DNA of 64,000 nucleotides from Cyanophora paradoxa CCMP329. Its lineage: Eukaryota > Plantae > Glaucophyta. Where the stretch lies: positions 62,001 to 126,000 of the forward strand of contig QPMI01000170.1 of NCBI GenBank assembly GCA_004431415.1. The letters run 5' to 3'. The translations under genes and the position numbers were made by a program. Below, piece by piece: positions 10,440-45,850 of this stretch. The first letter of the stretch is position 1. Every line of letters begins with the position of its first letter. Below the pieces are notes generated by a model, which saw only the letters and a list, made by a program, of their open reading frames with translations, had not been told where the DNA came from and searched no databases.

Positions 10440-12616
10440 TCAGGCGACGGGGAGCTTGGAGGCGGCGGCGGGCTGCGTGAGGAAGACGGAGATCTGCGGG
10501 GGCGGGGCGTGAGCACTCGCGGGGCGGCGGGGCGGCGGGGCGGGGCGGGGCGGGCCTGGATGCGGAGGTTGGCGAGGCGGGCGACGTGCAGGCACTCCTT
10601 GAGGTCCGAGTCGCGCACGAGCCCGACCAGGTCCCTGCCCCCGCCCTCAGCAGAGGGCGGGGCGGGGCGGGGCGGGGCGGGGGCACCCGTCGTCGTCCTT
10701 GTACTTGAGGGTGATGTCGCGCTCGGGGGGGATGACGTGGGAGAAGGCGGCGCGGACCTCCGAGTAGAGCGAGGCGCACGTCCCCGTCCCCGCGTCGAAC
10801 TTGAACCGCGCGATCTCCTCCCCGAAGATCGCCTTCATCGTGATCACCCCCTCCCCCGGCCCCGCCCCCGCCCCCGCCCCCGCCCCCCGCGGCCCCTTGT
10901 CGACAGGCACCGCCCCCGGGACGGGCGGAGAGGGTGCAGCGGGGAGGGCGCGCGGCGACGGCGTCGCGACCTGCATGACCCGCGGCGAGCCCGGGAGGAC
11001 GCCGGATTGGAGCGAGGGCGGCACCACGGGCGTCGCCCCCGCCGGCGGGTTGGGGCCCCCGACGCGGGGCCCCGGCCGCTGCCGCCGACGGACAACGGGC
11101 CGTCGCCGGCGGAGGAGGAGGAGACGGGGGCGGCGCCCGGGCCCGGGCGGTTGAAGCCGGCGGGGGGCGCCGGCTGGGCGGGGTGCAGAGAGGCGGCGGC
11201 ACTCCCGGAGGGGGCGGGCGTGGCGCCGGGGACGGGGCCGTTGGCGTGGGGGGGGACGGCGGGGACGGCGCCGGGTACGGGGATGGCGGACGCAGAAGGG
11301 GTGGGCGGGGAGGGGAGGTCGCCCTTGGCGCCGGGCCCGAACATGCCGGTGAAGAAGTTGCCGCCGTGCCAGGTGTGGCCGGCCGCCTCGACGCCCTCGC
11401 GGATCTGGGGCGTGAACATCGGCGACGCCGGCCACGCCGAGGAGCTCGCCTCGCTCCCCGTCTGCCCGGGGCTCTCCTGCTCGCCGCCCCCGCCCGTCCC
11501 GCCCGGCCCCGGCGAGGGGCCCTGGCCCGCCCCCCCCGGCCCGTGCTGCGAGTCGCCGGGCCCGCCGGGCGCGAAGAGGCTGCCGCCGTGCCAGGAGCGC
11601 GTGTTCTCGTGCACCGCCGCCGCCGCCGCCGCCGCCGCGGCGATGCTGGAGGGCGCCGTGCCCATCATCGCCTTCACGGCGGGGACGATCGAGGGGAGCG
11701 GTAGATCCGTCTGCACGAACGACTCCGGCACGCGCTGCTGGAGCAGCAGCGCGTCCCGCTCCCGCGACACATGCAGCATCTCCTCCGCGATGCGCCCCTG
11801 CTTCTCCGGCGGCATGTCCGCTACCATCCCCTTGAGGCGCTGGATCGAGCGGTTGACCTTGCGGATCTTGCGCGAGGGCCACCGGTCGATCCCGTACGAC
11901 CGGCAGATCTTCTTGAGCGTCTGCGCGCGGCGCGTCAGCAGCGGCAGGAGCGGGGCGCGGGGCGCGGGGGGGGGTGGCTCACCGTGGCGCAGACGCCCAT
12001 GTTCTTGGCGGCGACCATGAGGGGGCTCGTGAAGTGCTGCGCGAGCTCCTCGAAGCGCACCATCTTCTCCTTCGAGGCGAGCGCCGAGCGCGTCCCGTTG
12101 GCCGTCAGCGCGTTGATGAGGGCCACCTGCGAGAGGTACGCCGGCGCCTGCCCCGGCGTGCTCGCGCTCGTCTCGTCGCTGTCCGAGTCCCCCTCCTCGC
12201 CCTTGACCGCCGCCCCGCCCTCGGCGACGTGCACGCGCAGGTGCCCCGGGGGCGGCTGCTGCGGGGCGGAGGCGGCGCCCGAGGACATGGAGTGGGGCCG
12301 CTTGCCGGACATGGAGCCGCCGGCCTGGGCGGCGAGGCCGGGGGAGGCGGGGTTCGAGGAGTTGGCCTCGGGGAGGGAGGGGGAGTTGTGGTGAGACGAG
12401 GACGAGGGCGAGGTCGCGTCGTGGTGCTGGTGCGGGCCGCCCGCCCCCTGGCCCTGCCCCTGCAGGTACGCCGGGATCGCCGAGAAGGGCTGGCCCCCGC
12501 CCTCCATCGACTCGTGCGCGGGGACCGCCCCCGGCCGCGCTTGCCCCAGCTCCCCCGCGTTTCCGCTCGCTCTCCTCCCAAGATGCTGCTGCTGCTGCTG
12601 CTGCTGCTGCTGATGG

Positions 12617-12715
<99 letters not shown>

Positions 12716-18754: not shown

Positions 18755-19092
18755 CGACCGTCTTCCGTCGTATCGCTCTAGTTTGGTCATCCCTAGCTTT
18801 AGTCCTTCATGATCATGATCTTTCAACCTGTACCATAATGCGTTTTACCACAGACCTGTATAGATAGTGAACCTGTATAGATAGCGGACCTGTATACAGC
18901 TTGTCAATTTGGCTTCTTGCTGTTCGCTTTCAATCAACGACAGTCCACGTGCCACGGTGCACGTGCACCGCCGGGGCCGCAGTGGGCCCAGATATCTCCC
19001 GAGCAAAGCCCGGTGCAGCGCCGGCACTGCTGGCCTACTCGCTAGATCTTGAATTCTACATGCTAGAAGGGCGAGGGCTATGGGGCAAAAGA

Positions 19093-19768
19093 TCATACGC
19101 CGGGGGGCTTGGTGAGGTAGCCGATGCCGATGAAGAACGTAAGCAGCGCGATGAGAGTGAGGGTGAAGTGGTACAGCGACTTCGCCCCCTGCATCACCTG
19201 CGCGCACGGGCCTGAGGAACCTGCGGGTGGCGCACGGAGCTGGGCGCCGGCGCTGCCTAGCCGCGAAACTTAATCGCACCATGTTGCGCATGGCCAGCTT
19301 GGTGAACGAGCCGGAGGGAAGTTCGGTGGGCTCGGAGGTGCCGCTAGTGGCCCCCTCGTCTTGCGGCGCCTCCTCCTTGCCCTCCGCCGCGGCGAAGATA
19401 CCGAACGACCTCCGAGGGGCGCGGCGGGCGGTGAAGCCAGCCGCGAACCTCAGCGGTGTCGCCGTGAACATCGTGTTGCACGCATCTCCAAAGAAGGCGC
19501 GCTGCACGGGCGTCTGCGGCAAGGACACGCCTGCACGAGCATCAGTACGGGGCCAGATCTAGATATGCCCGATGCGCCGGGTAGATATATCATGTTGCGA
19601 GCATGGCGTTGCACACCGCTCGAGCCAGACCGCACGACGATGGAGGCACGCGCCACAGGCGCCGCACGGGCGCACGGGGGCGACAGGACCGCTGCGGGGA
19701 GGCGAGGCATCGGTCCTGGAAAGCACATGCGCGCAGCAGCACGTCTGCGGACCGGGAACGAACGCCAT
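19093..19768 (-). CDS. Plastid-targeted DUF3285-family small membrane protein of cyanobacterial origin, copy 1
   Basis: Spliced transit peptide MAFVPAVLSPPCARAAPVARAS. C-terminus SFTKLAMRNM/VMQGAKSLYHFTLTLIALLTFFIGIGYLTK matches the cyanobacterial KLAMRNMVRKG..SL.HF motif. Confidence 0.8.
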
Positions 19769-19850
19769 ATCAAAATGAAGACAGCAAGGTATACCAGGGG
19801 TACAGCAATAACAGCCGGCGCCTGGCCATTGCCATCAGACGTCGATATCG

Positions 19851-20750
19851 ATGCAAGCGTTCTCGGTTCATCCAGTCCCTCCGGCGCCTTCGGCGCGGTG
19901 CGGCAAGCTCGCTCGAGTGTCGGCCACGTGCACGCAGCGCCGCGACGCCGCGCTCTTGCGAACGCGGCGACGGAACAACGAGCATGCGTTGGCATTCCTG
20001 GGTCATCGCTGTATGTGGAGCGCGGCAGCGCGCGCTGCAACCTCTCTGGACGCAAGAAGCAGCTTCGACAAGGCGCAGAGGGCAAGACGCGCACTTTCTG
20101 TTTCTGCGCAAGCGGGTTCCAGCTCGGAGAACCTCAACGAGGCGCTAAAGGTACACGGGGACGCAGCGCGGCGCGCATGCCCCGCATACGCATGCTCGCG
20201 TAGACATTTCCTTCGCGCAGGACGTTACTGTCTTCAGGGCGAGCGACGGAGCGGAGGTTCCTATCGTCACCCTCTGGGCGGAGAAGCCGACCTGCATTGC
20301 CTTCTTCAGGTTCGCTCGAGCTCAAACTTGCGCGCGCTCAGCGGCTGGCCTCGGGATTAGGGCTCACAGAGTCAGCGGGCAAGGGCCCCAGCGGCTCGCT
20401 GACTCTTAATCTAGCCTACAAGGCTGGAGCTCGTAGAGGCGCCGAGCATATCGCAGCGCCCCAACCCCATATGTCCTCCCTTTCCCGTGCCCCTCCGAGG
20501 CTCCAAGTCAGGTCGGCCCTCTTCACGATGTGTAACCGCCTCCTCGATGCAGGCATTGGGGTTGCGTACTTTGCAAGCAAGTTCGTACCCGTCCCTCTCC
20601 CCCTTCCCCATTCCCACCCCATTCCCACCCCGGCCCCCTCCCGCGGGGTTGAAGCCTCGGAGCGGCTGGTGGCCGCCACCCCGGGGCGGACGGGGCCTGA
20701 TCTCGAGTTTGGAGCAGCAGGCGGAGGCGCTGTCGGGGGTGGCGATGTGA
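19851..20750 (+). pseudogene. 3'-truncated copy of the peroxiredoxin-like gene at the duplication junction
   Basis: Frame ...QAEALSGVA runs into ATG TGA at the junction (20745-20750). Confidence 0.75.
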
Positions 20751-21628
20751 AGGTCACGATCAGCCCTTATCCGATCTCGGGTTCGTTAACGCGCTGCGCA
20801 TCGTCGCCGCGCACGGAAGCGCGCTCCTCACGCTCAAGCGCTCGGTCAGGCTCCAGCATCTTCGTGAACGTGACAGGCGAGTCTTTCCAGCGTTTTCCTC
20901 GCCATTGGAGGTCCCGCTAGGGCAGGCTCCGAACAGCGCACCCTAGCGAACGCACCTTTCGCGCGCGAGATTGACGCCCCTGCAGGCAACGCGACGCGCA
21001 CCGTCACTGGTGGCACGTATTCAGTGACGCTCAAGAAGGCACGTGCTTTTCCAATCCGCTATAGGCTTCGAATTTCCCGCGCGCCAGGCGCTTTTGTCGT
21101 TCTCGCGTGCGCTCACGTCGCCCTTTGCACCTCCGCAGTGGATTTTCACGGTGCTCAGCCTGACGGATAATTTCTGCGCCGTGGGCGAGGGCTCGCACGA
21201 ATGTGAGTCGAATCAAATTGAACTATGAAATGTCACAAGGATGCCGTGGTCGCGCAGGTATGCCCCTGGAGGGCCGCACCAGTTTACTGGACTGCCCCTT
21301 GCCCCCGGGACCCTTCACTTTTCAGGGTGCGTCCGTCGAAGCCTGTTGACTTCGAGCTTGCAATTGCAATCCTCAAGCCTGATGCGCAGCTCGCTGCAAC
21401 GTTCCGGGCTTCGCGCCCTCCGGCTCCTACGGCTTCCAGATCAACGCCGCGGACGATTCGAACGCCCCCCTGTTTTGCCAGAACACCAACGTGCAGGTCG
21501 CTTCCGGCGGGAACGTCCTTCGCCCGTCGTGGGCGAGTTTTCTTAGCAGTGCCCGCGGCGCGCACGCAGCCGCTTCGGACAGCGAGAACGGCGCAGCAGG
21601 CCGCGGGGATGATGAGTACGCGATATAG
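20745..21628 (+). pseudogene. 5'-truncated copy of the ML-domain gene
   Basis: Duplicate of 17871-18754 lacking the start codon and signal peptide. Confidence 0.7.
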
Positions 21629-21966
21629 CGACCGTCTTCCGTCGTATCGCTCTAGTTTGGTCATCCCTAGCTTTAGTCCTTCATGATCATGATCTTTCAA
21701 CCTGTACCATAATGCGTTTTACCACAGACCTGTATAGATAGTGAACCTGTATAGATAGCGGACCTGTATACAGCTTGTCAATTTGGCTTCTTGCTGTTCG
21801 CTTTCAATCAACGACAGTCCACGTGCCACGGTGCACGTGCACCGCCGGGGCCGCAGTGGGCCCAGATATCTCCCGAGCAAAGCCCGGTGCAGCGCCGGCA
21901 CTGCTGGCCTACTCGCTAGATCTTGAATTCTACATGCTAGAAGGGCGAGGGCTATGGGGCAAAAGA

Positions 21967-22641
21967 TCATACGCCGGGGGGCTTGGTGAGGTAGCCGATG
22001 CCGATGAAGAACGTAAGCAGCGCGATGAGAGTGAGGGTGAAGTGGTACAGCGACTTCGCCCCCTGCATCACCTGCGCGCACGGGCCTGAGGAACCTGCGG
22101 GTGGCGCACGGAGCTGGGCGCCGGCGCTGCCTAGCCGCGAAACTTAATCGCACCATGTTGCGCATGGCCAGCTTGGTGAACGAGCCGGAGGGAAGTTCGG
22201 TGGGCTCGGAGGTGCCGCTAGTGGCCCCTCGTCTTGCGGCGCCTCCTCCTTGCCCTCCGCCGCGGCGAAGATACCGAACGACCTCCGAGGGGCGCGGCGG
22301 GCGGTGAAGCCAGCCGCGAACCTCAGCGGTGTCGCCGTGAACATCGTGTTGCACGCATCTCCAAAGAAGGCGCGCTGCACGGGCGTCTGCGGCAAGGACA
22401 CGCCTGCACGAGCATCAGTACGGGGCCAGATCTAGATATGCCCGATGCGCCGGGTAGATATATCATGTTGCGAGCATGGCGTTGCACACCGCTCGAGCCA
22501 GACCGCACGACGATGGAGGCACGCGCCACAGGCGCCGCACGGGCGCACGGGGGCGACAGGACCGCTGCGGGGAGGCGAGGCATCGGTCCTGGAAAGCACA
22601 TGCGCGCAGCAGCACGTCTGCGGACCGGGAACGAACGCCAT
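21967..22641 (-). CDS. DUF3285-family gene, copy 2 (apparent 1-bp frameshift near 22227)
   Basis: Identical to copy 1 except gtggcccctc versus gtggccccctc, which could be a real frameshift or a sequencing error. Confidence 0.65.
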
Positions 22642-22723
22642 ATCAAAATGAAGACAGCAAGGTATACCAGGGGTACAGCAATAACAGCCGGCGCCTGGCC
22701 ATTGCCATCAGACGTCGATATCG

Positions 22724-24257
22724 ATGCAAGCGTTCTCGGTTCATCCAGTCCCTCCGGCGCCTTCGGCGCGGTGCGGCAAGCTCGCTCGAGTGTCGGCCAC
22801 GTGCACGCAGCGCCGCGACGCCGCGCTCTTGCGAACGCGGCGACGGAACAACGAGCATGCGTTGGCATTCCTGGGTCATCGCTGTATGTGGAGCGCGGCA
22901 GCGCGCGCTGCAACCTCTCTGGACGCAAGAAGCAGCTTCGACAAGGCGCAGAGGGCAAGACGCGCACTTTCTGTTTCTGCGCAAGCGGGTTCCAGCTCGG
23001 AGAACCTCAACGAGGCGCTAAAGGTACACGGGGACGCAGCGCGGCGCGCATGCCCCGCATACGCATGCTCGCGTAGACATTTCCTTCGCGCAGGACGTTA
23101 CTGTCTTCAGGGCGAGCGACGGAGCGGAGGTTCCTATCGTCACCCTCTGGGCGGAGAAGCCGACCTGCATTGCCTTCTTCAGGTTCGCTCGAGCTCAAAC
23201 TTGCGCGCGCTCAGCGGCTGGCCTCGGGATTAGGGCTCACAGAGTCAGCGGGCAAGGGCCCCAGCGGCTCGCTGACTCTTAATCTAGCCTACAAGGCTGG
23301 AGCTCGTAGAGGCGCCGAGCATATCGCAGCGCCCCAACCCCATATGTCCTCCCTTTCCGTGCCCCTCCGAGGCTCCAAGTCAGGTCGGCCCTCTTCACGA
23401 TGTGTAACCGCCTCCTCGATGCAGGCATTGGGGTTGCGTACTTTGCAAGCAAGTTCGTACCCGTCCCTCTCCCCCTTCCCCATTCCCACCCCATTCCCAC
23501 CCCGGCCCCCTCCCGCGGGGTTGAAGCCTCGGAGCGGCTGGTGGCCGCCACCCCGGGGCGGACGGGGCCTGATCTCGAGTTTGGAGCAGCAGGCGGAGGC
23601 GCTGTCGGGGGTGGCGGAGGGCCTGCGGGCGTGCGGGGTGGAGCTCGTCGGCGTCGGCAGCGGCACCGTCGAGCAGGCCGCCGCCTGGGCCCAGGAGGTC
23701 CCTTTCGCCGGAGCCGTCCGCACCCCCCCCCCCCCCCTCCCCCCGCCCGCCCGTCCGGCGCCCCTGGCGGCTCCCTCGGGGCGCCCACGCGGGGCCGGGG
23801 TGGGTCGCAGGTGTACACGGACCCCTCCAAGAGCTCCTACGCCGCCCTCGGCCTCGCCGTCCGCCCCCGCGTCCCCGCCCCCGCGCCTTCCCCGCCATCG
23901 CCCCCCCACGCGCTCGCGGCCGCAGAGGGGCCTCCTGACGACGTTCAACCCGGCCTCGCTGGTGAAGACCGTGCAGGCCTTCCAGGCGGGGTACACGCAG
24001 AACTGGGCCATCTCGAGCGAGGCGAGCGGCGGGCGGCGGCGGGCGCGCGGTGCGGGCGGGGCGGGGGCTGAGGGGGCCGGGGCGGGGCGGGGGGGCAGGT
24101 GGACGGGTTCCAGCAGGGCGGCCTCTTCGTGGTGGACACCGACGGGAGCCTCCTCTTCGCCCACAGGGAGGCCCGCGCCGGCGACCACCCCGACCCCCGC
24201 GCCCTCCTCGCCGCCTGCCCCCGCCCACCCCCCGCATCCCTCCCTGTTGACCACTGA
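22724..24257 (+). CDS. Peroxiredoxin-like 2 / AhpC-TSA_2 (FAM213-like) redoxin, probably plastid-targeted
   Basis: MQAF start. Spliced TLWAEKPTCIAFFR/HWGCVLCKQ/QAEAL (CxxC), VYTDPSKSSYAALGL and GFQQGGLFVVD...LFAHRE...GDHP. Confidence 0.88.
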
Positions 24258-32190: not shown

Positions 32191-32442
32191 TCGTCCAAAC
32201 TTTCGTCCAACTTTCGTCCAACTTTCGTCCAACTTTCGTCCAACTTTCGTCCAACTTTCGTCCAACTTAAGCTTCCGTCCAAGTACTAGTGCCAGTCGAC
32301 GTCGTAATCCGATGATCAAACCTCAACTTTCGTCCAACTTAAGCTTCCGTCCAAGTACTAGTGCCAGTCGACGTCGTAATCCGATGATCAAACCTCAACT
32401 TTCGTCCAACTTTCGTCCAACTTTCATTCAACTTTCGTCCAA
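32191..32442. repeat. 11-bp tandem array (CCAACTTTCGT)n containing an internal ~60-bp direct duplication
   Basis: Directly visible; ends about 110 bp upstream of the LCIB-like ATG. Confidence 0.93.
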
Positions 32443-32554: not shown

Positions 32555-35520
32555 ATGGCGTTCATCCTCTCCGCACCGGCTTCGGCGGCCCAGCGCGCGG
32601 CGCCCGTAAGCGCGGCCACGGGCTCGAGCTCCCTGCTCCAGTCCATCCAGCACCGGCCCGCGCGCGCGGCTAGCCAGTTCGGTGGCCGGAACACCGTCGC
32701 GCGCACGTTCGACGTGCAGGAGCAGGTGTCGTTCTCGGTCGACTGCAATGCGTACAACGTCAACAGTACGAGTCCCCGCCGCCTGCGCGCATACCTAGTT
32801 CAGACGTCCCTCGTACTCCTCGTGGCTCATTAGTGCTTCTTTCGTTGCGCGCGCACTGGTTTCGCATCGAGCAGTGGCGAACCGCGCCGCCCTGTCGAAG
32901 AAGGTGAACGCCGTCCCGCACGTCGGAGCGCGATGGGGTCTAGCAGATTCGTCCGTGCGCGTGGCTGTCGTTCTCATGCGATATGAACGCAGGTCGACTA
33001 TCACCACCCGGCGGATATTCGTCAGGGCTACGACCCGGAGGTGCGTTTGCCGATGCATGCGGACGGGTCATTTGGCTCGTGGATCTAGGAACTGGACTCG
33101 GCCGGAGAGCTGCAGCGAGCTGTAGTTTATATTCGACGCGCTCCGGAGAGACCGGCGGCGCCGGCGATTCGTAGCGCGCAGCGTTCGCAAACTATTGAGA
33201 GCTCGCCAACCGACGTCGGATGCGCGCTCGCAGGATCCGCACCCGGCGTTCACTCAGGTCATTAACGAGCTCTATCCGGATGCCGTTTCCAGCCAGGATT
33301 TCCTCCGCCAGACCTACAAGGTGCGCTCCCCACGGGACACCGACCGATCCGCGGCTCAACCGCAGTCGCCGTCGTAGGCCCTGCTCAAGCTTGGCTTCTC
33401 GAAAGTGGTGCGAACTGGCTGTGCGTCCTCCGAGGTTGCGCGTCCCTGATCCGCGCCGCAGAACACGCTGCCCTGCGCGGTGCGGCCGTGGAGTTCTGCT
33501 GGGGCGTGTTGACGGCGCAGCTGCAGGTCGCTCACGTTGCGGGGCGCAGACGCTGTGCCGTGACGAGATCTGCCGGCCGCTGGGCAAGGACATCGAGGAC
33601 CTGTTCTGCCGCACGGACGAGGACGAGGCGAACGGCAAGTTCATCCTCAACGCCCTCGCCGGCATCATGAGCTCCGGCCGCACCGCCGTCAAGGCCGCCG
33701 TCTCCCACGCCCCCATGGTCCGCCCCCGAGCGCCACGCCCCGCCCCGACGGCGCCGGGCTGCCCCGCCGACGCCCCGCCCAGATGGACGGCTACGAGCGG
33801 TACCTGTTCATGTCGTTCCCGCACATCGCCATCGACTACCGCGGGCGCGTCGGCATGGTCCGCCGCCCGGGTCGCTCCGAGGTCCGTTCGCGCGCGACGT
33901 GTGCAGGCGGGGCGGGGCGTGAGGCGGGGCGCAGAACTCGCACGCGTGCGGAGCGCTGCTGGGCCTGGAGGACGCGTTCGCCACGGGGGCGCTGCAGACG
34001 CAGCCGGCCATCGACCCCGCGGACCTCGAGATGAGCATGCTCAAGCGCCGCTTCTTCAACCTCGTCCCCCGCGGCGTGCGCGCGCCCCTCCCCCCCCTCT
34101 TCCCGCGCCGCTGGGGCGGCTGGGGCGGGGCGGGGCTGAGGGCGGGGCGCAGAGCAAGCCGAACCTGGTGGAGATCACGGACATGGCGCTGCAGCTGGCG
34201 GAGGAGACGCTCGACAACGTCGTCCCCGAGGTCGTCTCCAGCCGCCGCTGCCACTACGCCGTCCGCGCCCCGCCCCGCCCCGCCCCGCCCCCGCTGCGGC
34301 GCCGGGCTCTGAGGCTGCGGCGCGGCGCGCGGCGGCAGGTCGTCACGGGGATCCAGATCCACGGGCCTGACGGGACCAACTTCATCGCCCCGTCGCGCAT
34401 GTACGCCGTCATCCACGGCAAGCGCCAGGAGATCAACGTCGACGTCCGCCCCGCCCCGGCCCCCCGCCCGCCCCCCGCCTCTGACCCCGGCTCCGGGGGC
34501 GGGCAGTTCACGCCCTTCGCGGTGACCAAGGCGGGGAAGACGTCGACGACGCCGGCGGGCCTGGGCTCGGCGCTGGAGGCGGCGTCGGCGGCCTTCGACG
34601 CGGCCTCGCGCGCCCTCGTGGTGGCCTCGAAGGAGAAGAACCTGACGCCGCGCAAGAAGGCCCCGGCCGCCAAGGCGCGCACCCCCGTCAACGGCGCCGC
34701 CCCCAAGAAGAAGGCCACCTCCTCCCGCAAGAAGAAGGACAACTACGGTCCGCCCCGCCCCGCCCCGAGCGCCCCGCGGCGTGCGCCGGGCAGCGCGGCT
34801 GACGGGCGGGGCAGGCACCTACTCGCCGACGCCGAGCTCGGTCTCGCCGGCCTCGATGTCGACCTCGCCGCTGCCCTACACCCCGACCCCGACCCCGACC
34901 CCCGTGCCCTCCCCGGCCACCTACTCCCCGACCCCCGCCGCCGGCGGCCAGGTCTCCTACGGTCCGCCCGCCCCGCCCCAGCTCGGGCCCGGGCCCCCCG
35001 CGCACGCGCTGACGGCGCGCTGATGGCGCGCAGGCATCGCGTCGCCCCCGGCCGGGTACGAGCCGCAGTACAGCGACTACAGCTACGACGCCGCTGAGAC
35101 CACCTATGCCGACGCCGCCCGTGCGCACCCGCCGCTGCGCCACTCCCCGCCCCCCCCCGCCCCCCCTCACGTCTCGCCGGCGCAGCGTCGGGCTCGAGCT
35201 CTGGGTACAGCATCGCGTCGCCCCCGGCCGGGTACGTGCCCCAGTACGACGACCAGTACGGCTACGACCAGGGCTACTCGTACGACCAGGGCTACGCCTA
35301 CGACGGTCCGCCCCCCGCCCCGCCCCGCGCCCCGCCCCGCGCCTCGCCTCGAGCTCGCCTCACCGCGCGCGCGCGCAGGCTCCGCTCAGGCCCCCGCCTA
35401 CTATGATGAGCCGGCCAGCTCCGGCAGCTATTGTGCGCCCCTCCCCTCCTCTTTTTCCCCCTCCCCGCCTGACGCGTTTCTTTGCGCGCAGCGATCTCCG
35501 CGCCCCCGGCGGGCTACTAA
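32555..35520 (+). CDS. LCIB: LCIB-family (theta-type) carbonic anhydrase homologue with a plastid transit peptide and a long Lys/Pro/Tyr-rich C-terminal tail
   Basis: Transit peptide MAFILSAPASAA. Core LCRDE, GRTAVKAAVSHAP, FPHIAIDYRGRVGMVRRPG, SHACGAL and VVTGIQIHG, with the Cys/His/Cys zinc ligands intact. Confidence 0.9.
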
Positions 35521-35846: not shown

Positions 35847-35914
35847 GCGCGCGGAAGTACGCGTGAAGTGGTGGCGGACGGCGGGGCGCTCCTGGAGCTG
35901 GAGCTGGGGGCGCG
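35847..35914 (-). pseudogene. Inverted copy of the transit-peptide exon of the 38034 gene
   Basis: Encodes RPQLQLQERPAVRHHFTRTSAR versus RPQLQLQERPAVRHQFTRTSAR at about 38092-38160. No nearby in-frame ATG. Confidence 0.75.
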
Positions 35915-36118
35915 CGGTCCGGGCGCCTGCTGGCACACCGGCGATTGGAGTCCCGACCGGGGGATGAGCTTGAAAAAAGGTCAAAAAATTACTGGGTTGG
36001 CGCGATCGCGAGGGGGGGGGGTGCGGCGGAACAGGGGGAGCGGAGTGGGGGCCGAGGAGGGGCGCGGGCGGCGGGCGCGGGGAGCAGGGGGGCGGGGGCG
36101 GGAGCGGCGGGCGGCGGG

Positions 36119-37794
36119 TCAGTAGTTCTTGGTGGGCGGGGTGTACTTGGAGAGGTCGAGCTTCTGGAAGTAGGCGATGGTGTGGGCGAGGCCCTGGGCG
36201 AGGGGCACCTGGGCGGGGGCGTGAGCGAGGGGCGGGGGGGGCCGAGGGGGGGAGGGGGCGGGGCGGGGCGCCTTGGGCCTCCACCCGGCGAGCTGGGCGA
36301 AGGCGAGGGAGTTGTCGGGCCTCCGCCGCGTCGGGTCGTCCTCGGGGAGCTCCTTGTGCACCACCCGCGAGCCCGAGCCCGGCGTCAGCTTCAGCACCAG
36401 CTCCGCCAGCTCCTTCATGTTGAACTCGTCCGGGTTCCCCAGGTTCACCGGCCCTGGCCCCGCCCCTCAGCGCCCCGCCCCGCCCCCGCGCCGGGCGCCG
36501 GGAGGGGGGTACCGAGGAAGCCGTCGCTCTGGTTCATCATGCGGACCATGCCCTCGACGAGGTCGGAGACGTACTGGAAGGAGCGCGTCTGCTGCCCGTC
36601 CCCGAAGATCGTGATGTCCTCCCCATTCACGGCCTGCCGCACGAAGTTCGACACCACCCGCCCGTCGTACGGGTGCATCTTCGGCCCGTACGTGTTGAAG
36701 ATCCGGATCACCCTGCGCCCCGCTCGCCCCCGCCCCGCTGCCGCGCCCCCGCGCGCCGGCTGCGCACCGTACTTCCGTCTTGTACATGCGGTTGTAGTCG
36801 AACATCAGCGTCTCGCCCGCCCTCTTACCTTCGTCGTAGCACGCTCGCGGCCCTATCGGGTTAACGTTGCCCCTGTATGTTTCCACCTGCGCGGGGGAGG
36901 GGGGGTTAGGGAGGCGCAGGGCGCGAGGCGCTGCGGGAAAGGAAAGGAAAGAAAGCACTCGCCTGCGGATGCTCCAGAGGGTCCCCGTACACCTCACTCG
37001 TCGACGCCTGAAGAATGCGCGCGCCGTGCTCTCTGCCCCCGCCCAATCAGGGCCCTGCCGCCCACCGCCTCCGCAACCACGGGCCCCACCTTGCGAGGTC
37101 CAGCATGTTCATCGTCCCGATCACTGCGGTCTTCATTGTCTTGACGGGATCGTACTGCAAACGCGGTTGGCCGCCGGGGCAGCGCGCGCGCGCGCGCGCG
37201 CCGACTGACGGACCTGGTAGTGACCAGGGGCGGCGGGGCACGCCAGGTGGTAGATCTGGTCGAGCTTCTCGGGCGAGGCCCACTTTTCCTGCAGCGCAAG
37301 CAAGCACGTAGCTTAGCGGCGGGACGCGGCGCGGGGCGAATGGCGCTGGGCCCGCTTGCCGGCACACTCTAGCTCGAGCGCGACTGAAGACGCAAGACGA
37401 ACCACGACATCGTGCTCGACGAGAGTGAAGTTCGGATGGCTCAGCAGATCTGCTACGTTGCTCACGACTCCCGTGAACATGTTGTCTAAGCCTGGCGAGT
37501 CTCGCGGTCAGCGCGGGCGGATAGGGTGGGCATTATGTCATTGGCCGCTGAGAAGGGTTGCGGACACACAGACGACCTTGTGGCCTTCATTGATGAGGCG
37601 CTCGCACAAGTGGGAGCCGACGAAGCCGGCGCCTCCCGTCTGCGAGGTGGCGCGGAGGGCGGGCACGGGATCAGCACAGGCCTCGAGCGCTGACTCAAGG
37701 AGCGGCGCCAGGAGTCTCTGACGGAGCTGCGAGAGGAGGGCGAGTGGGGGCGGTTGCGGACCACGAGGATTCGTTTCTTTCCGCTTTCGACCAT
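36119..37794 (-). CDS. UXS1: UDP-glucuronic acid decarboxylase (UDP-xylose synthase)
   Basis: [76 protein letters not shown] and DDPTRRRPD. Confidence 0.96.
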
Positions 37795-38033: not shown

Positions 38034-39814
38034 ATGTCGGCCGCCTTCGTCGTCCAGGCCCCCCTCGCGGCGCCCCGCTCCGCCCCTTCCACGCGTCCCC
38101 AGCTGCAGCTCCAGGAGCGCCCCGCCGTCCGCCACCAGTTCACGCGTACTTCCGCGCGCACACGTAGCTTCGATGTCTCCCAGTCCGTTAGCCCTCTCGT
38201 CCTCGCCTCCGGTGCGCCTCGCGAAGCTTCGCGGCGGTTGGGGCGGCTAAGCTGCTGGGGCGCACGCGCCCTCTTGAGTCGGGATCGGGCATGCGTTCTC
38301 GGACTGATCAATATCTTATGATCTTTTCGCAGCCGACAAGAAGGTCGAGACGGCCTTGAGCGGCGCGTCGGCCGCCCTGAAGGGCGCCGCGCGCGCCCTG
38401 AACATCACCGTTGACACCATTTCGACTGCCGCGCGCGCAAGTGCGTGTGAGAATGTAGTCCCAGGCGTAGCGTTGTGCTGGAGGGCTAACTGACGCTGCC
38501 TGCGCGCAGTGTCCTCCGCCGCGGAGTCCGTCGAGGACGCGGCTCGCACCGTCGGTAAGCAAGCTTGCACCTCGCTCGGGGCGATGAGCATCCATCTGAA
38601 CTGTTGCGCGCGCAGCCGGCACGGACAGCTCGTCCTCGTTCAGCTCTGCGGCGTACAGCTCGAGCTCGAGCCAGTCCTACGGCTCTTCCTCCAGCTGTGA
38701 GCGCCCGTTTTCTGCCCACGCCCTTTCAGCCTTGTCGACACTTACGATTCACCAGCGATCGCGGCGCCCCCGTCGGGCTACAGCGCCCCGACCTACTCGG
38801 CGCCGCCGGTGACCGTCGGCTCGGGCTACTCGATCGCGTCGAAGCCGGCGAACATGAGCCCGCCGCGCTCGACTCAGATCACGCCCTCGGGCCCCGGCTA
38901 CAGCATCGCGTCGAAGCCGATGAACGTCAGCCCGTCGCGCTCGACCACGCAGACCCCGTCGGGCCCCGGCTACAGCATCGCGGCCAAGCCCGGCACCTAC
39001 GGCACCACGAACTACTCGCAGTTCTCGGCCCCCGTCGCCCCCGCCGCCCCGGCCTACAGCGCCCCGGCCCCGGCCTACAGCGCGCCCACCAGCTGTGCGC
39101 CCCCCGCCCCCGCGCCATGCGCGCCGCACGGCCCTGACGGGGTCGCCGCGCAGCCATCGCGGCCCCCCCGTCGGGCTACAGCGCCCCGAAGCCGGCCCCC
39201 GTCCCCGTCAACGTCGGCACCGGCTACTGTGCGCCCTCGTTCCCCCCGCCCTCACTCTTCATTCTTCTGACTCGCGCCCAGCGATCGCGTCCAAGCCTGC
39301 CGGCTACACCGCCCCTGCCCCGGCCCGCGCCCCTGTGCCCTCGGGCTCCGGCTACAGCATTGCTTCGCCCCCGGCCGGCTTTGTTCCGCGCCCGGTCTCT
39401 CCCCGCCCGATGGCTCCCCGCCCGGTCTCCCCGGCCCCCGCCTACGGCGCTCGCCCCATGTCGCCCGCCCCCGTTGCCCGCCCGCCCGTGCCCTCGGGCT
39501 CCGGCTACAGTATTGCTTCGCCCCCGGCCGGCTTTGTTCCGCGCCCGGTCTCTCCCCGCCCGATGGCTCCCCGCCCGGTCTCCCCGGCCCCCGCCTACGG
39601 CGCTCGCCCCATGTCGCCCGCCCCCGTTGCCCGCCCGCCCGTGCCCTCGGGCTCCGGCTACAGCATTGCTTCGCCCCCGGCCGGATTCGTTCCGCGTCCG
39701 GTCTCGCCGGCTCCCTACGGCCGCCCCGTGTCTCCCCGCCCGGTCGCGCCGTCCCGGGCCCCGGTCCCGTCCGGCCCCGGCTACTCGATCGCGGCCCCTC
39801 CCGCCCGCCGCTAA
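38034..39814 (+). CDS. Plastid-targeted, intrinsically disordered Pro/Ser/Ala/Tyr repeat protein with about 10 (GY)SIA[SA][PK]P motifs; candidate Rubisco-condensate linker
   Basis: Transit peptide MSAAFVVQAPLAAPR, a short Ala-rich helix, then a repeat region without Asp or Glu. It contains 153-nt (51-aa) tandem units starting at 39335, 39488 and 39641. Confidence 0.8.
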
Positions 39815-42298: not shown

Positions 42299-45200
42299 AT
42301 GCCGGGCGGGGACCAGCCGTCGTTCGAGCGCTCCGTCCTGATCTACAGCAAGGACCAGGTGCTTCAAAGCAAGCCCTGTGCATTGACGCAGCTCAGGCGG
42401 GCGCGGGCGCTGCCGCAGGTGTGCGTGCACCCCTCCGATGACAGAAGCGAGCGGATCTGTGGCAAGCTCACACTTGAAAAAGTGCCCGCTTACAGCGCCG
42501 TATTCGTACGTACGCTGAGCGCCGCGCAGCTGTCGCAAAACGCGATCCTCCTCGAGTGGAAGCCGGCGCAGCTGCAGACGCACGGGCGGCAGGCGCAGCA
42601 CATGAAGCCTCCGTATGCTCAATCGATGTCCTCCGCGTCTTCCTCGGCGCCTCCAGCCGGCGATGAATTTGTGATGGTCTCTCGCGGTTTATTCCGCCGC
42701 CACGCGGACCAGAGCGCCACAGGCGAGCCGCCTCCTCAAGAAGCGGGTGATATCTCTTGCTCAGCTCCGCAGCAGGGAGCTCAAACGGAACCCGCGCGAC
42801 GGCGCCGGCCCCGCAGCAGTCGGTGCCGGCGCCGACGCCGGCAGCGCCGCGCTCGCATAGCAGCGCCGAACTGTACGCGGTCCGCGTGATGGTAACAATT
42901 TTGAGTATATAACTCATTAGGTAGAGCATTTGACTTTTAATCAAGTTCTCTTAGGTGAGCGATATCCAAAGCTTCCGAAAGTTCATCCCCCCGCCGGTCT
43001 GTCGTGCACCGCTCCGCGGGCCGCGCGGCGCTGCATGAGGCGTCCCTTGGAACGCAGCTCGGTGGCTTCCCGCAGCTCATCATCAAGACGAAGAGCGGGC
43101 TCGGTGCGTCACCCCACCTCCCCTCCACCCACCTGCCCTCCCTCGATCGCCTAACACGGCCCTCTGCTCAGCGTACCCGCCCCTGTACTTCCACGACAGG
43201 CAAGGGCCCCCGCCGCCAAAACCGCCGCCCTTGCACCGCGTCGATCCGGCCGCAGCGGCCTGAAGGATTTCTTCAACGCTATGAAGGAGCACGTGACGGT
43301 CGCGCGGTGCGGCGGGCCGGCGGCGCGCGCGGCGCGGGGCGGGCGCGGGGGCGCGACGGCGGGGGCGGCAGGTCGCCGGACGACCCGAACGAAATTGAGG
43401 TCCTCTGTGAGGATGGGGACCTCCAGGCGAGCCGCGCGCCCCGCCCCCGGCCCCCCTCGGCTCCACTCCCCTCAAAGCGACCGCAGGGGACGGGCGGGGA
43501 GGGGGCGGGGGGCGTGCGGGTGGGGCCCCGCGTCGGCCTCTCCCCGGGCGCTTTCCGAGACCTCGTCGCGATGCAGGCGCACGCCGCGCCCCGCCCCCGC
43601 CGCCCCCCGCCCCGCCCCATGCCAACCCACACCGCAGCGCGCCCTGAGCGTGGGCGCCACCCCCGGCTCGCCCCCCGCGGCAGGCAACCCAGTCGAGAAG
43701 GTACGAGTGACGAACTGGGCTTCACTGCACTGCTGATGCGCCGCGCAGCTCGTGTGGTCGGGCCTTCGCGAGCTCTCCAAGGTTACTCGCCTTGCCCGTC
43801 ACGGCGCCCGTGCGCCCGCCCGGCCTCCAGCCGCCCCCGCCCAGCACTGAGTCGCTCGCACAGACCAACTCGCCGGCGGGCTGCGCGGCCTGCAGCAGAG
43901 CATGGAGGGGGCGGCCCGGCGCGCCGTCTCGCCGCAGCCGCCGGCGCAGCGCGGGGTGGAGGACGGGGAGGGGGCCGGCAGGCCGGCGGCCGCCGCCCAC
44001 GGGGACGACTTCGTTCTCATCGAGGACGCCGTTCGCCCGCCCGCCGCGGGGCCCTCCTCTGGCCCTCACCCCGCCGCAGTCGACGCCTCTCTTCGGCCTG
44101 CGCCGGCCCCGCGGGCCCGAGCTCTCCCCCGAAGAGTGGACGACCCTCGTGCCTCCTGCCGCCCGCCGCCCCGCCCCCGCCGCCGGAGGGGGCGACGGGG
44201 CGGGCAGGTGGACGAGGAGGGGCGGGTGCGGGACGCGGGACGCGTGCGGGCGCGCATCGCGAGCGGCGGCCTCTCCGAGGAGCTCCGGCCCCTCGTCTGG
44301 CGCTTCCTCCTCGGCCTCTACCCCTGGGACTCCTCCTACGCCGACCGCGAGCGCATCGACGCCCAGAAGCGGCGCGCCCGCCCGCCGCACCCCGCGCGCA
44401 CCCCCGCCGGCGTCGGCGGCTCACGGGGCGGGCAGGGCTGAGTACGAGGCGGTGAAGCAGCAGTGGGCGTCGATCACGGGGGCGCAGGAGGCGCGCTTCG
44501 CGAAGTTCCGGGAGCGGCGCTCCCGCATCGAGAAGGACGTCGTCCGCACCGACCGCGAGCTCGAGTTCTACGCGGGGCCCGACGACCAGAACGCCAACCT
44601 CGCCGCCCTCCACTGCATCCTCCTCACCTACGCCTTCTACAACTTCGACTTGGGCGCGCTCGCCCCGCCGGCCCCGCCGGCCCCGCCCGCGGCGCCGGCT
44701 GAGGGGCGCGGGGGCCCCAGGCTACTGCCAGGGGATGAGCGACATGGCGGCGCCGATCCTCTACGTCGTGCGCGACGAGGCCCTCGCCTTCTGGTGCTTC
44801 TGCGGGCGAGCCACTCCTCCTCCTCCTCGCCCCGCCCCGCCCCGGCCCCGCTGCTCACGTGCGCGGCGGGGCGGGCCGGCAGGCTGCTGGACGGGCGGGG
44901 GATGGCGAGCAACTTCACGAAGGACCAGGCGGCGATGCAGGCGCAGCTCCTCGAGCTCTCCAGGCCCGCGCCCCCCCCCCCCCTCTGCCGCCCTGGGCTC
45001 CGGGGGCGCGGCGCGGGGCCGGCTGACGGGGCGCAGCATCGTGCGGACCGTGGACCCGGCGCTCCACGAGCACCTCTCGATGAACGGCTGCGGCAACTTC
45101 TTCTTTGCCTTCCGCTGGGTCGTGCGCCCGCCCGCCCCCCCCCCCCCCCCCCCCCCCCCCCCGCGCCCCCGGCCCCGTCCCCGTCGCCCCTCGACGCTTC

Positions 45201-45850
45201 GCGCTCCGACTCGCGCCCGGCGCAGCTCATAATCTTCAAGAGGGAGTTCGAGATGCACCAGGTGCTGCGGCTGTGGGAGATGGCGTGGAGCAGCGAGCTG
45301 CCGCGCCTGCCCCTCTACCTCGCCGCCGCACTCATCGTCCAGGCCAGGCGCGCCCCCGCCCCGCCCTCGCCCTCGCCCCCGCGCCCCTCGCCCGCCTCAA
45401 AGCCGGGGGCGACGGGGGCAGGGAGCGGATCGTGAAGGGGCGGATGGAGTTCGACGAGGTGCTCAAGTTCGCCAACTCCCTCGCCGGCCAGCTCGACGTC
45501 GACGAGTGCGCCCCGGGCCCCGCCCCGCCCCCGCCCCGCGCCCCCCGACGCCCCCGGCCCCCAGGTGCATCACCGCGGCCGAGGCGATGCAAAGGCGGCA
45601 CGCCGCCCTCCTCGAAGGGGCGCACCCCCGCGCCCCTTCTCCCACCCCTCCCGCCCCCTCGCCGGCCCCCGCCGCCCCTGCTCCGGCCATCCCAGCCCCC
45701 TCGACGGGCCCCGCGACCGCCGGCCCCACGTCGCCCCCGCATGACTCCTCTTTGGCCCCCGCGTGCCCTTCGGCGGCCCCAGCCGCTTCAGGATCCTTAA
45801 GCTCATCGGCATCAGGGACCGCCGCCCCCGACCAGCATCCACAAACGTGA
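42299..45850 (+). CDS. TBC1D15/Gyp7-like Rab GTPase-activating protein (N-terminal PH-like domain plus TBC domain)
   Basis: LIYSKDQVCVHP, GGLSEELRPLVWRFLLGLYPWDS, IEKDVVRTDR (Arg finger), GYCQGMSD (Gln finger) and FFAFRW-LIIFKREF. Confidence 0.93.

Follow-up and report, generated by a model that had tools for sequence, protein, structure and literature searches.

Glaucophyte plastids contain a central body whose nature, relic carboxysome or pyrenoid, has been disputed for decades, and in the papers searched we found no protein suggested to keep it together. The body contains Rubisco, is non-encapsulated and has no traversing thylakoids (PMC6704402), a feature that leaves its CO2 source to be explained. 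Here, we analyze a 64-kb stretch of nuclear DNA ("the window") from the glaucophyte Cyanophora paradoxa and ask whether a repeat-rich gene within it, read in a first-pass annotation as encoding an EPYC1-like Rubisco linker, could specify such a protein. The answer redirects the interpretation, with partial support, from a single linker to a three-gene system comprising this gene, a paralogue (9509) and the neighboring LCIB-family gene g3709. By naming these candidates together with a motif of 8 to 12 residues and a stoichiometric prediction, the locus makes the question directly testable.

Structure and surroundings of the repeat gene

The gene lies on contig tig00000718, where it adjoins g3710, and corresponds to the old (2012) model 12104_cds:4323. 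Its features are as follows.

38034..39814 (+): the gene, seven exons encoding a 452-aa precursor, a splice model without stops
38034..38207 (+): transit peptide for the cyanelle, aa 1-58, with Phe at position 5 and ending in V-L-A, from the translation and an N-terminal peptide
38333..38554 (+): Ala-rich amphipathic segment, aa 60-110, exons 2 and 3, probably helical (hydrophobic moment, 0.53)
38616..38696 (+): Ser-rich spacer exon by composition (59% Ser)
38756..39094 (+): exon 5, four motif copies (Ile codons 38758, 38833, 38905, 38977) with a 24-aa period
38833-38990 (+): 72-nt (24-aa) repeat unit within exon 5
39154..39228 (+): exon 6, one motif copy (Ile codon 39156)
39282..39814 (+): exon 7, five motif copies (Ile codons 39284, 39359, 39512, 39665, 39788) with Pro/Arg-rich spacers
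39323..39705 (+): 153-nt (51-aa) tandem repeat, 2.5 copies, 96% matches
35847..35925 (-): 79-nt copy (91%) of part of exon 1, without a start codon, between g3709 and g3710

The exons span 38034-38211, 38333-38440, 38510-38554, 38616-38696, 38756-39094, 39154-39228 and 39282-39814. All six introns (53 to 121 nt) follow GT..AG and are in phase 1, and the spliced frame has no internal stop, with an exon GC3 of 0.84 to 1.0. Two single-ORF readings (38809-39270 and 39095-39814) were rejected for the seven-exon model, as both cross introns. The old model has identical exons 1 to 6, retains one intron piece and misses exon 7 (supplement, PMC4510345), so that support for exon 7 comes from splice signals, the open frame and motif continuity and not from peptides. 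The start of exon 6 resembles that of exon 5, acceptor site included, and the sequence closest to exon 5, as judged by eye, is the C-terminal part of paralogue 9509. Exon 7 carries a net charge of +18, and its final motif copy forms the C terminus of the protein. The two full copies of its 153-nt unit differ at 4 of 153 nt, in agreement with the recent expansion first proposed for these near-identical units.

The 79-nt copy of exon 1 is a trace of local duplication. Between g3709 and the repeat gene lies g3710 (window ~36120-37780, -), a NAD-dependent epimerase/dehydratase that we ourselves read as UDP-glucuronate decarboxylase-like; it stands head to head with the repeat gene at a distance of a few hundred bases and shows no evident motif link. 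Elsewhere in the window, identical short repeats at an offset of ~2.87 kb (18854/21728 and 20606/23478, within ~18850-23500) suggest a tandem segmental duplication, a pure run of TGT and then TGC trinucleotides at 12584-12714 likely encodes a poly-Gln tract on the minus strand, and ORF fragments at ~43000-45500 (+) resemble what we take to be a TBC-domain Rab GTPase-activating protein.

A short motif as the repeating unit

The protein has a pI of 10.8, and residues 138-452 (pI 10.9) consist mainly of Pro (25%), Ala (17%), Ser (16%), Gly (9%), Val (7%), Tyr (6%) and Arg (6%). This region lacks acidic residues (D+E = 0; K+R = 24), and there is no Asp or Glu anywhere beyond residue 137. We count 14 SP sites, including six RPVSP and two RPMSP, and 2 TP sites. 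A basic, Asp/Glu-free, low-complexity region rich in SP sites, as described in the first-pass annotation, is therefore what the full gene model also encodes.

That annotation had in addition placed Tyr stickers ~20 to 51 aa apart, which does not hold for Tyr itself, with spacings of 19 to 30 aa from Y300 to the end but mostly 5 to 16 aa, and twice 24 aa, upstream. It does hold for the unit that actually repeats, namely, the motif GYSIA[SA][PK]P(AG[YF]), present in 10 copies with a core of I[AS][SA][KP]P that usually has GYS before it and AG[YF] after it. Successive copies are 25, 24, 24, 40, 25, 25, 51, 51, and 41 aa apart, and this 24- to 51-aa period lies within the 20 to 120 residues used by FLIPPer as the spacing range of linker stickers (PMC11570498). 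At the DNA level, the motif pattern has 15 matches in the 64-kb window versus 2.0 expected, a count of at least 15 being reached in 0 of 100 shuffles, and 13 of the 15 matches fall in the repeat gene and the LCIB gene at 32555-35520.

Exons 4 to 7 contain 23 to 29% Pro and 67 to 81% disorder-promoting residues, with FoldIndex alone near zero or slightly positive, and a single-sequence structure model of exon 7 (pTM, 0.12) has no predicted secondary structure or helix. Composition and model together point to the large-scale disorder typical of linkers, as was first supposed. The motif itself holds a Gly and two Pro, and the stickers are accordingly predicted to differ from short amphipathic, charged alpha-helices, a call for which a single-sequence model is weak evidence. 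Trp is absent from the protein, and with it any KWSP-type motif.

An LCIB-family neighbor shares the motif

The sole other carrier of the motif in the 64-kb window is a gene of the LCIB family.

32555..35520 (+): LCIB-family carbonic anhydrase gene tig00000718_g3709, 573 aa, PF18599, two genes upstream of the repeat gene
34817..35517 (+): acidic Tyr-rich tail of g3709, three motif copies (Ile codons 35036, 35212, 35494)

An exon of this neighbor matches EukProt tig00000718_g3709.t1 with 98% identity over the query. The protein consists of a transit peptide, a PF18599 domain, an Ala-rich helix, a Lys-rich linker and the motif-bearing tail. Its domain is complete (E = 1.6e-48; 165 bits versus a cut-off of 25), and its CRDE, FPH and ACG motifs align with Chlamydomonas LCIB (5k5w; E = 1.7e-35), giving C144, H211 and C235 as candidate zinc ligands, an assignment that follows the beta-carbonic anhydrase pattern (PMC5876011). 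The domain and the Cys-His-Cys motifs place g3709 in the LCIB/LCIC family, some members of which are inactive as purified proteins (PMC5876011).

The tail comprises 144 aa with a net charge of -12, and its last motif copy is at the extreme C terminus. Its alignment with exon 7 is beaten by 0 of 3,000 shuffles, and the DNA is 83 to 87% identical over 39 to 48 nt. Moreover, a phase-1 intron interrupts 5 of the 13 motif copies (3 in the repeat gene and 2 in g3709), in each case at the identical position, 2 nt ahead of the Ile codon. Both the intron positions and the DNA identity argue for common descent rather than convergence, with the motif exons having arisen as symmetric exons that were duplicated. 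Since the motif is kept in contexts of charge +18 and -12, what is conserved is the motif rather than bulk charge. The paralogue g4886 is 67% identical to g3709 over domain and helix and carries no motif copy. We found no report of a motif-bearing tail on any LCIB in the papers searched.

The resemblance of the helices is modest. Between exon 2 of the repeat gene and the helix that follows the LCIB domain, the alignment score was matched by 22 of 5,000 shuffles for g3709 and by 373 of 5,000 for g4886, and BLASTP gave no match for this pair of segments; the g3709 helix is predicted at H365-392 in a low-confidence single-sequence model (pLDDT, 39).

Several further details of these genes were observed. 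Following the shared helix, residues 388-430 of g3709 (window ~34625-34749) form a Lys-rich linker with a net charge of +12, the second LCIB protein likewise has a Lys-rich linker at ~400-430, and both are reminiscent of histone H1 tails. The 2012 and 2019 models of g3709 conflict in the region of the second exon (32765-33000), where the later model has no clean junctions. Tandem repeats of an 11-nt unit, which include two identical stretches of 72 nt, occupy 32191-32442, end ~110 nt before the LCIB start codon and are possibly promoter-related.

Cyanelle localization and abundance

Expression, processing, presence in purified cyanelles and abundances are all taken from published proteomics (PMC4510345), in which the repeat protein and its processed N terminus were detected. 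A TAILS N-terminal peptide from a whole-cell sample maps to position 58 of 12104_cds:4323, which was marked by the authors as having Phe in its presequence (PMC4510345). Because the old models drop residues across phase-1 junctions, this position equals S59 here; we infer from the equal mass that the mature protein starts at S59, directly after V-L-A, and V-x-A is the cyanelle cleavage pattern (PMC4510345). The protein was quantified at 1.5 fmol in purified and 2.4 fmol in Triton-washed cyanelles, a normalized ratio of 2.36 (PMC4510345), and is hence not a washed-out periplasmic protein, although the enrichment itself weighs little, as ratios above 2.3 also occur for other scarce proteins of the same table. 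The cyanelle preparation does hold contaminants, e.g., histone H2B. Taken together, the F5 presequence, the V-x-A cleavage and the quantification in both intact and Triton-washed cyanelles place the protein in the plastid, probably in its stroma, and the layout first described, a transit peptide followed by one short, probably helical segment (aa 60-110), is retained.

Its amount is a different matter. We obtain ~0.13 to 0.3 molecules per Rubisco holoenzyme, versus ~2 for CsLinker, from top-3 quantification on an old model that lacks exon 7 and yields few tryptic peptides. The protein thus appears too scarce for a main linker. A better fit to that role is 9509_cds:2612, an unannotated entry in the cyanelle proteome table (PMC4510345). 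By eye, 9509 shows a Phe-containing transit peptide, a helix closely similar to that of the repeat protein, a Ser/Tyr-rich middle with five INHGY repeats, about six motif copies and a near-identical C-terminal end. Isolated cyanelles yielded peptides of 9509, one of which covers two motifs, and the Triton wash did not deplete the protein (normalized ratio, 1.22) (PMC4510345). With 26.1 fmol of 9509 against 95.6 of RbcL, 80.4 of RbcS and 51.5 of Rubisco activase (PMC4510345), there are 2.2 to 2.6 copies per L8S8 holoenzyme, as expected of a linker, and the repeat protein is ~9 to 17 times scarcer; top-3 label-free values are rough for low-complexity proteins with few tryptic peptides, and 26 fmol is not diagnostic of Rubisco, as ApcE (107), PsbA (61) and AtpB (51) also give simple ratios. 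The LCIB proteins were measured at 1.6 and 2.8 fmol for pieces of g3709 and at 8.4 fmol for g4886 (PMC4510345).

Among the sequences listed in the cyanelle proteome table, in which long entries are truncated, GYSIA occurs six times, always in the repeat protein or 9509; no third carrier was seen among them, although YSIA and IAAPP each turned up once more in an unassigned sequence. Separately, Rubisco activase (26296_cds:6567; PMC4510345 Table S2) has an N-terminal extension with GYSAP, a string that also follows two motifs in the repeat protein. In activase it lies before the N terminus detected at residue 101, and its relevance is doubtful.

Homology searches

Searched exon by exon, the repeat gene gave no Pfam or PDB match for the exons queried, and exon 7, submitted as part of an open frame of 296 aa, gave no database match. 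Exon 5, compared with 1.84 billion representatives, returned two matches, both unrelated low-complexity repeat proteins and rejected as such. A motif scan of JGI metagenomes yielded one single-copy match (1308-1340, -) in an unrelated bacterial-type gene, which we attribute to chance. For region 500-545 of the LCIB tail, only the query itself appeared among 10 candidates. In control comparisons, self-matches score 209 to 311 bits and exon 7 scores 46 bits against the tail query; such scores being absent, the repeat protein was never among the proteins scored, whether absent, mis-modeled or not picked. No homologue was recovered from another glaucophyte by searches insensitive enough to miss the known 9509, and these blanks therefore say nothing on other glaucophytes. 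The lack of similarity to known linkers asserted in the first-pass annotation thus stands at the level of exon-wise database searches (no Pfam, PDB or large-library match) and of the missing Trp. In the literature searched to late 2026, in which coverage of subscription journals is thin and an earlier mention is possible, we found no glaucophyte linker or linker motif.

A candidate Rubisco-binding motif

A role in CO2 concentration is strengthened by the sharing of the motif with an LCIB-family protein and by a paralogue at linker-like abundance. In Chlamydomonas (PMC10473226) and in Ulva (10.64898/2026.07.16.738900), a Rubisco-binding motif is found on both the linker and accessory proteins, and accessory proteins with fewer copies are thereby targeted to the pyrenoid. 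Because the copy pattern in Cyanophora is the same, with many copies on disordered proteins and few on a protein of a CCM family, we read the motif, by analogy, as a glaucophyte Rubisco-binding motif that would organize the central body. In this view, 9509 is the bulk linker, the repeat protein serves as an adaptor or in a minor linking role, and the tail of g3709 tethers an LCIB complex to the body. We lean toward this reading with modest confidence.

Under such an arrangement, the repeat gene would belong to a small family encoding disordered proteins of the Cyanophora stroma, in which an Ala-rich helix and a multivalent motif array follow the transit peptide. The motif most likely binds Form IB Rubisco weakly, so that many-copy proteins would cross-link holoenzymes into the shell-less central body, a pyrenoid presumably formed by phase separation, and few-copy proteins would be recruited to it as in Chlamydomonas and Ulva. 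The abundant 9509 would act as the bulk linker. The repeat protein would be an accessory linker, or else an adaptor whose helix may pair with that of 9509 or LCIB, and the motif tail of g3709 would attach a putatively active carbonic anhydrase complex to the Rubisco body, at its surface or inside it. A motif-tagged LCIB is thus a concrete candidate answer to the question of where the CO2 of the central body comes from. More tentatively, it is conceivable that glaucophytes use their own proline-rich, non-helical Rubisco-binding motif and, having joined it to an LCIB-type carbonic anhydrase through exon shuffling, release CO2 from stromal bicarbonate on or inside a shell-less, thylakoid-free condensate, i.e., carboxysome logic carried out with pyrenoid-style host parts. 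If true, Rubisco condensation would have arisen independently once more among lineages with primary plastids, and it would do so through a new sticker type for Form IB Rubisco, which may interest crop pyrenoid engineering.

The main alternative, unlikely but coherent, is that the motif serves self-association or binding to the LCIB complex instead of Rubisco. The family would then form a scaffold, or a layer at the periphery, by which LCIB is kept around the central body for CO2 recapture or as a leak barrier. The Tyr motifs of PYCO1 are indeed self-association stickers and not its Rubisco-binding ones (PMC10288592), and green-algal LCIB is located in the stroma or at the pyrenoid periphery, where LCIB/C gathers, rather than in the matrix (10.64898/2026.07.16.738900), a placement that also weighs against the Rubisco-binding reading. 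The helix of the repeat protein resembles the LCIB post-domain helix, and the repeat gene and g3709 are neighbors in the genome whose products occur in similar amounts (1.5 fmol versus 1.6 and 2.8 fmol). However, 9509 (26 fmol) exceeds both LCIBs summed (~10 to 11 fmol) and matches the stoichiometry of Rubisco, and the invariant Ile and Pro positions are suggestive of a motif that docks on a folded partner.

Docking on a phycobilisome, a thylakoid complex or the nucleoid, with these proteins as accessory linkers there, seems to us improbable. Phycobilisome subunits are very abundant, and the only PDB match reported for exon 7 is a red-algal phycobilisome linker, but at E = 1.4 this match is not significant. 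Basic Asp/Glu-free repeats and the Lys-rich segment of both LCIBs could bind DNA or acidic surfaces, yet conservation of the motif in an acidic tail argues against DNA binding by the motif, and the LCIB-family partner points toward carbon concentration.

Two further explanations carry very little probability. The P/S/A/Y composition and the YSAP-type repeats are reminiscent of wall proteins and would suit an extensin-like structural role in the periplasm, peptidoglycan or envelope. Against this stand the stroma-type transit peptide with V-x-A cleavage, the ratio of 2.36 after a periplasm wash in which putative periplasmic proteins drop to ~0, and the motif held in common with an LCIB protein. 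Equally far-fetched is a dispensable by-product of local duplication, derived from exons of 9509 or the LCIB tail, whose repeats expanded without selection, which low abundance, near-identical 153-nt copies and the stray exon 1 copy nearby would suit, but not the intact seven-exon frame, the high GC3, a protein that is made and processed, or a motif kept while its spacers diverge.

Comparison with known Rubisco linkers and scaffolds

Within the LCIB/LCIC family, g3709 is ordinary in its PF18599 domain, its Cys/His/Cys motifs, its occurrence as one of a paralogue pair and its presence in the plastid, whereas the 144-aa acidic tail with three linker-family motif copies sets it apart from the LCIBs described in the papers searched. 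If the candidate Rubisco-binding reading is true, the Cyanophora system would share with the carboxysome scaffolds CcmM and CsoS2 the principle of a scaffold that joins Rubisco and carbonic anhydrase. It differs from them in that no SSUL or gamma-carbonic anhydrase Pfam match was found in the exons scanned (1, 2, 5 and 7), and in that the glaucophyte body is shell-less (PMC6704402).

Like the green Form IB linkers EPYC1, CsLinker and SUPA1, the Cyanophora repeat protein is plastid-targeted, basic and low in complexity, with stickers ~25 to 50 aa apart, and is apparently lineage-restricted, and the motif of EPYC1 and SUPA1 also occurs on accessory proteins. CsLinker is present at ~2 copies per holoenzyme in vivo, as is 9509, and Rubisco condensation needs an approximately twofold excess (PMC11570498); SUPA1 needs the same excess (10.64898/2026.07.16.738900). 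In contrast to these linkers, the stickers of the repeat protein are Pro-rich and predicted to be non-helical, they number 10 rather than ~4 to 6, an N-terminal helix is shared within the Cyanophora family, and the protein is sub-stoichiometric and a candidate binder only. Of the EPYC1-like linker first proposed, the multivalent, basic, disordered plastid protein survives; the helical stickers of EPYC1 and the abundance of a main linker are not seen. As it departs from linkers in both these respects and homology was not found in the searches described above, we do not file the protein as a member of the EPYC1, CsLinker, SUPA1 or PYCO1 families.

PYCO1, the linker of Form ID Rubisco in Phaeodactylum, likewise combines low-complexity repeats with short linear aromatic motifs and has a shorter paralogue. 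Its two motif classes (KWSP and GTGYNP) find a parallel in 9509, which bears the GYSIA motif alongside five INHGY repeats. The sequence and the form of Rubisco are different, and the repeat protein is without Trp; in addition, the only other protein found to carry the main PYCO1 sticker is a short isoform (PMC10288592), whereas the Cyanophora motif occurs on an LCIB-family protein. In style, nevertheless, the Pro-rich linear sticker of the repeat protein is closer to PYCO1 than to EPYC1 or CsLinker.
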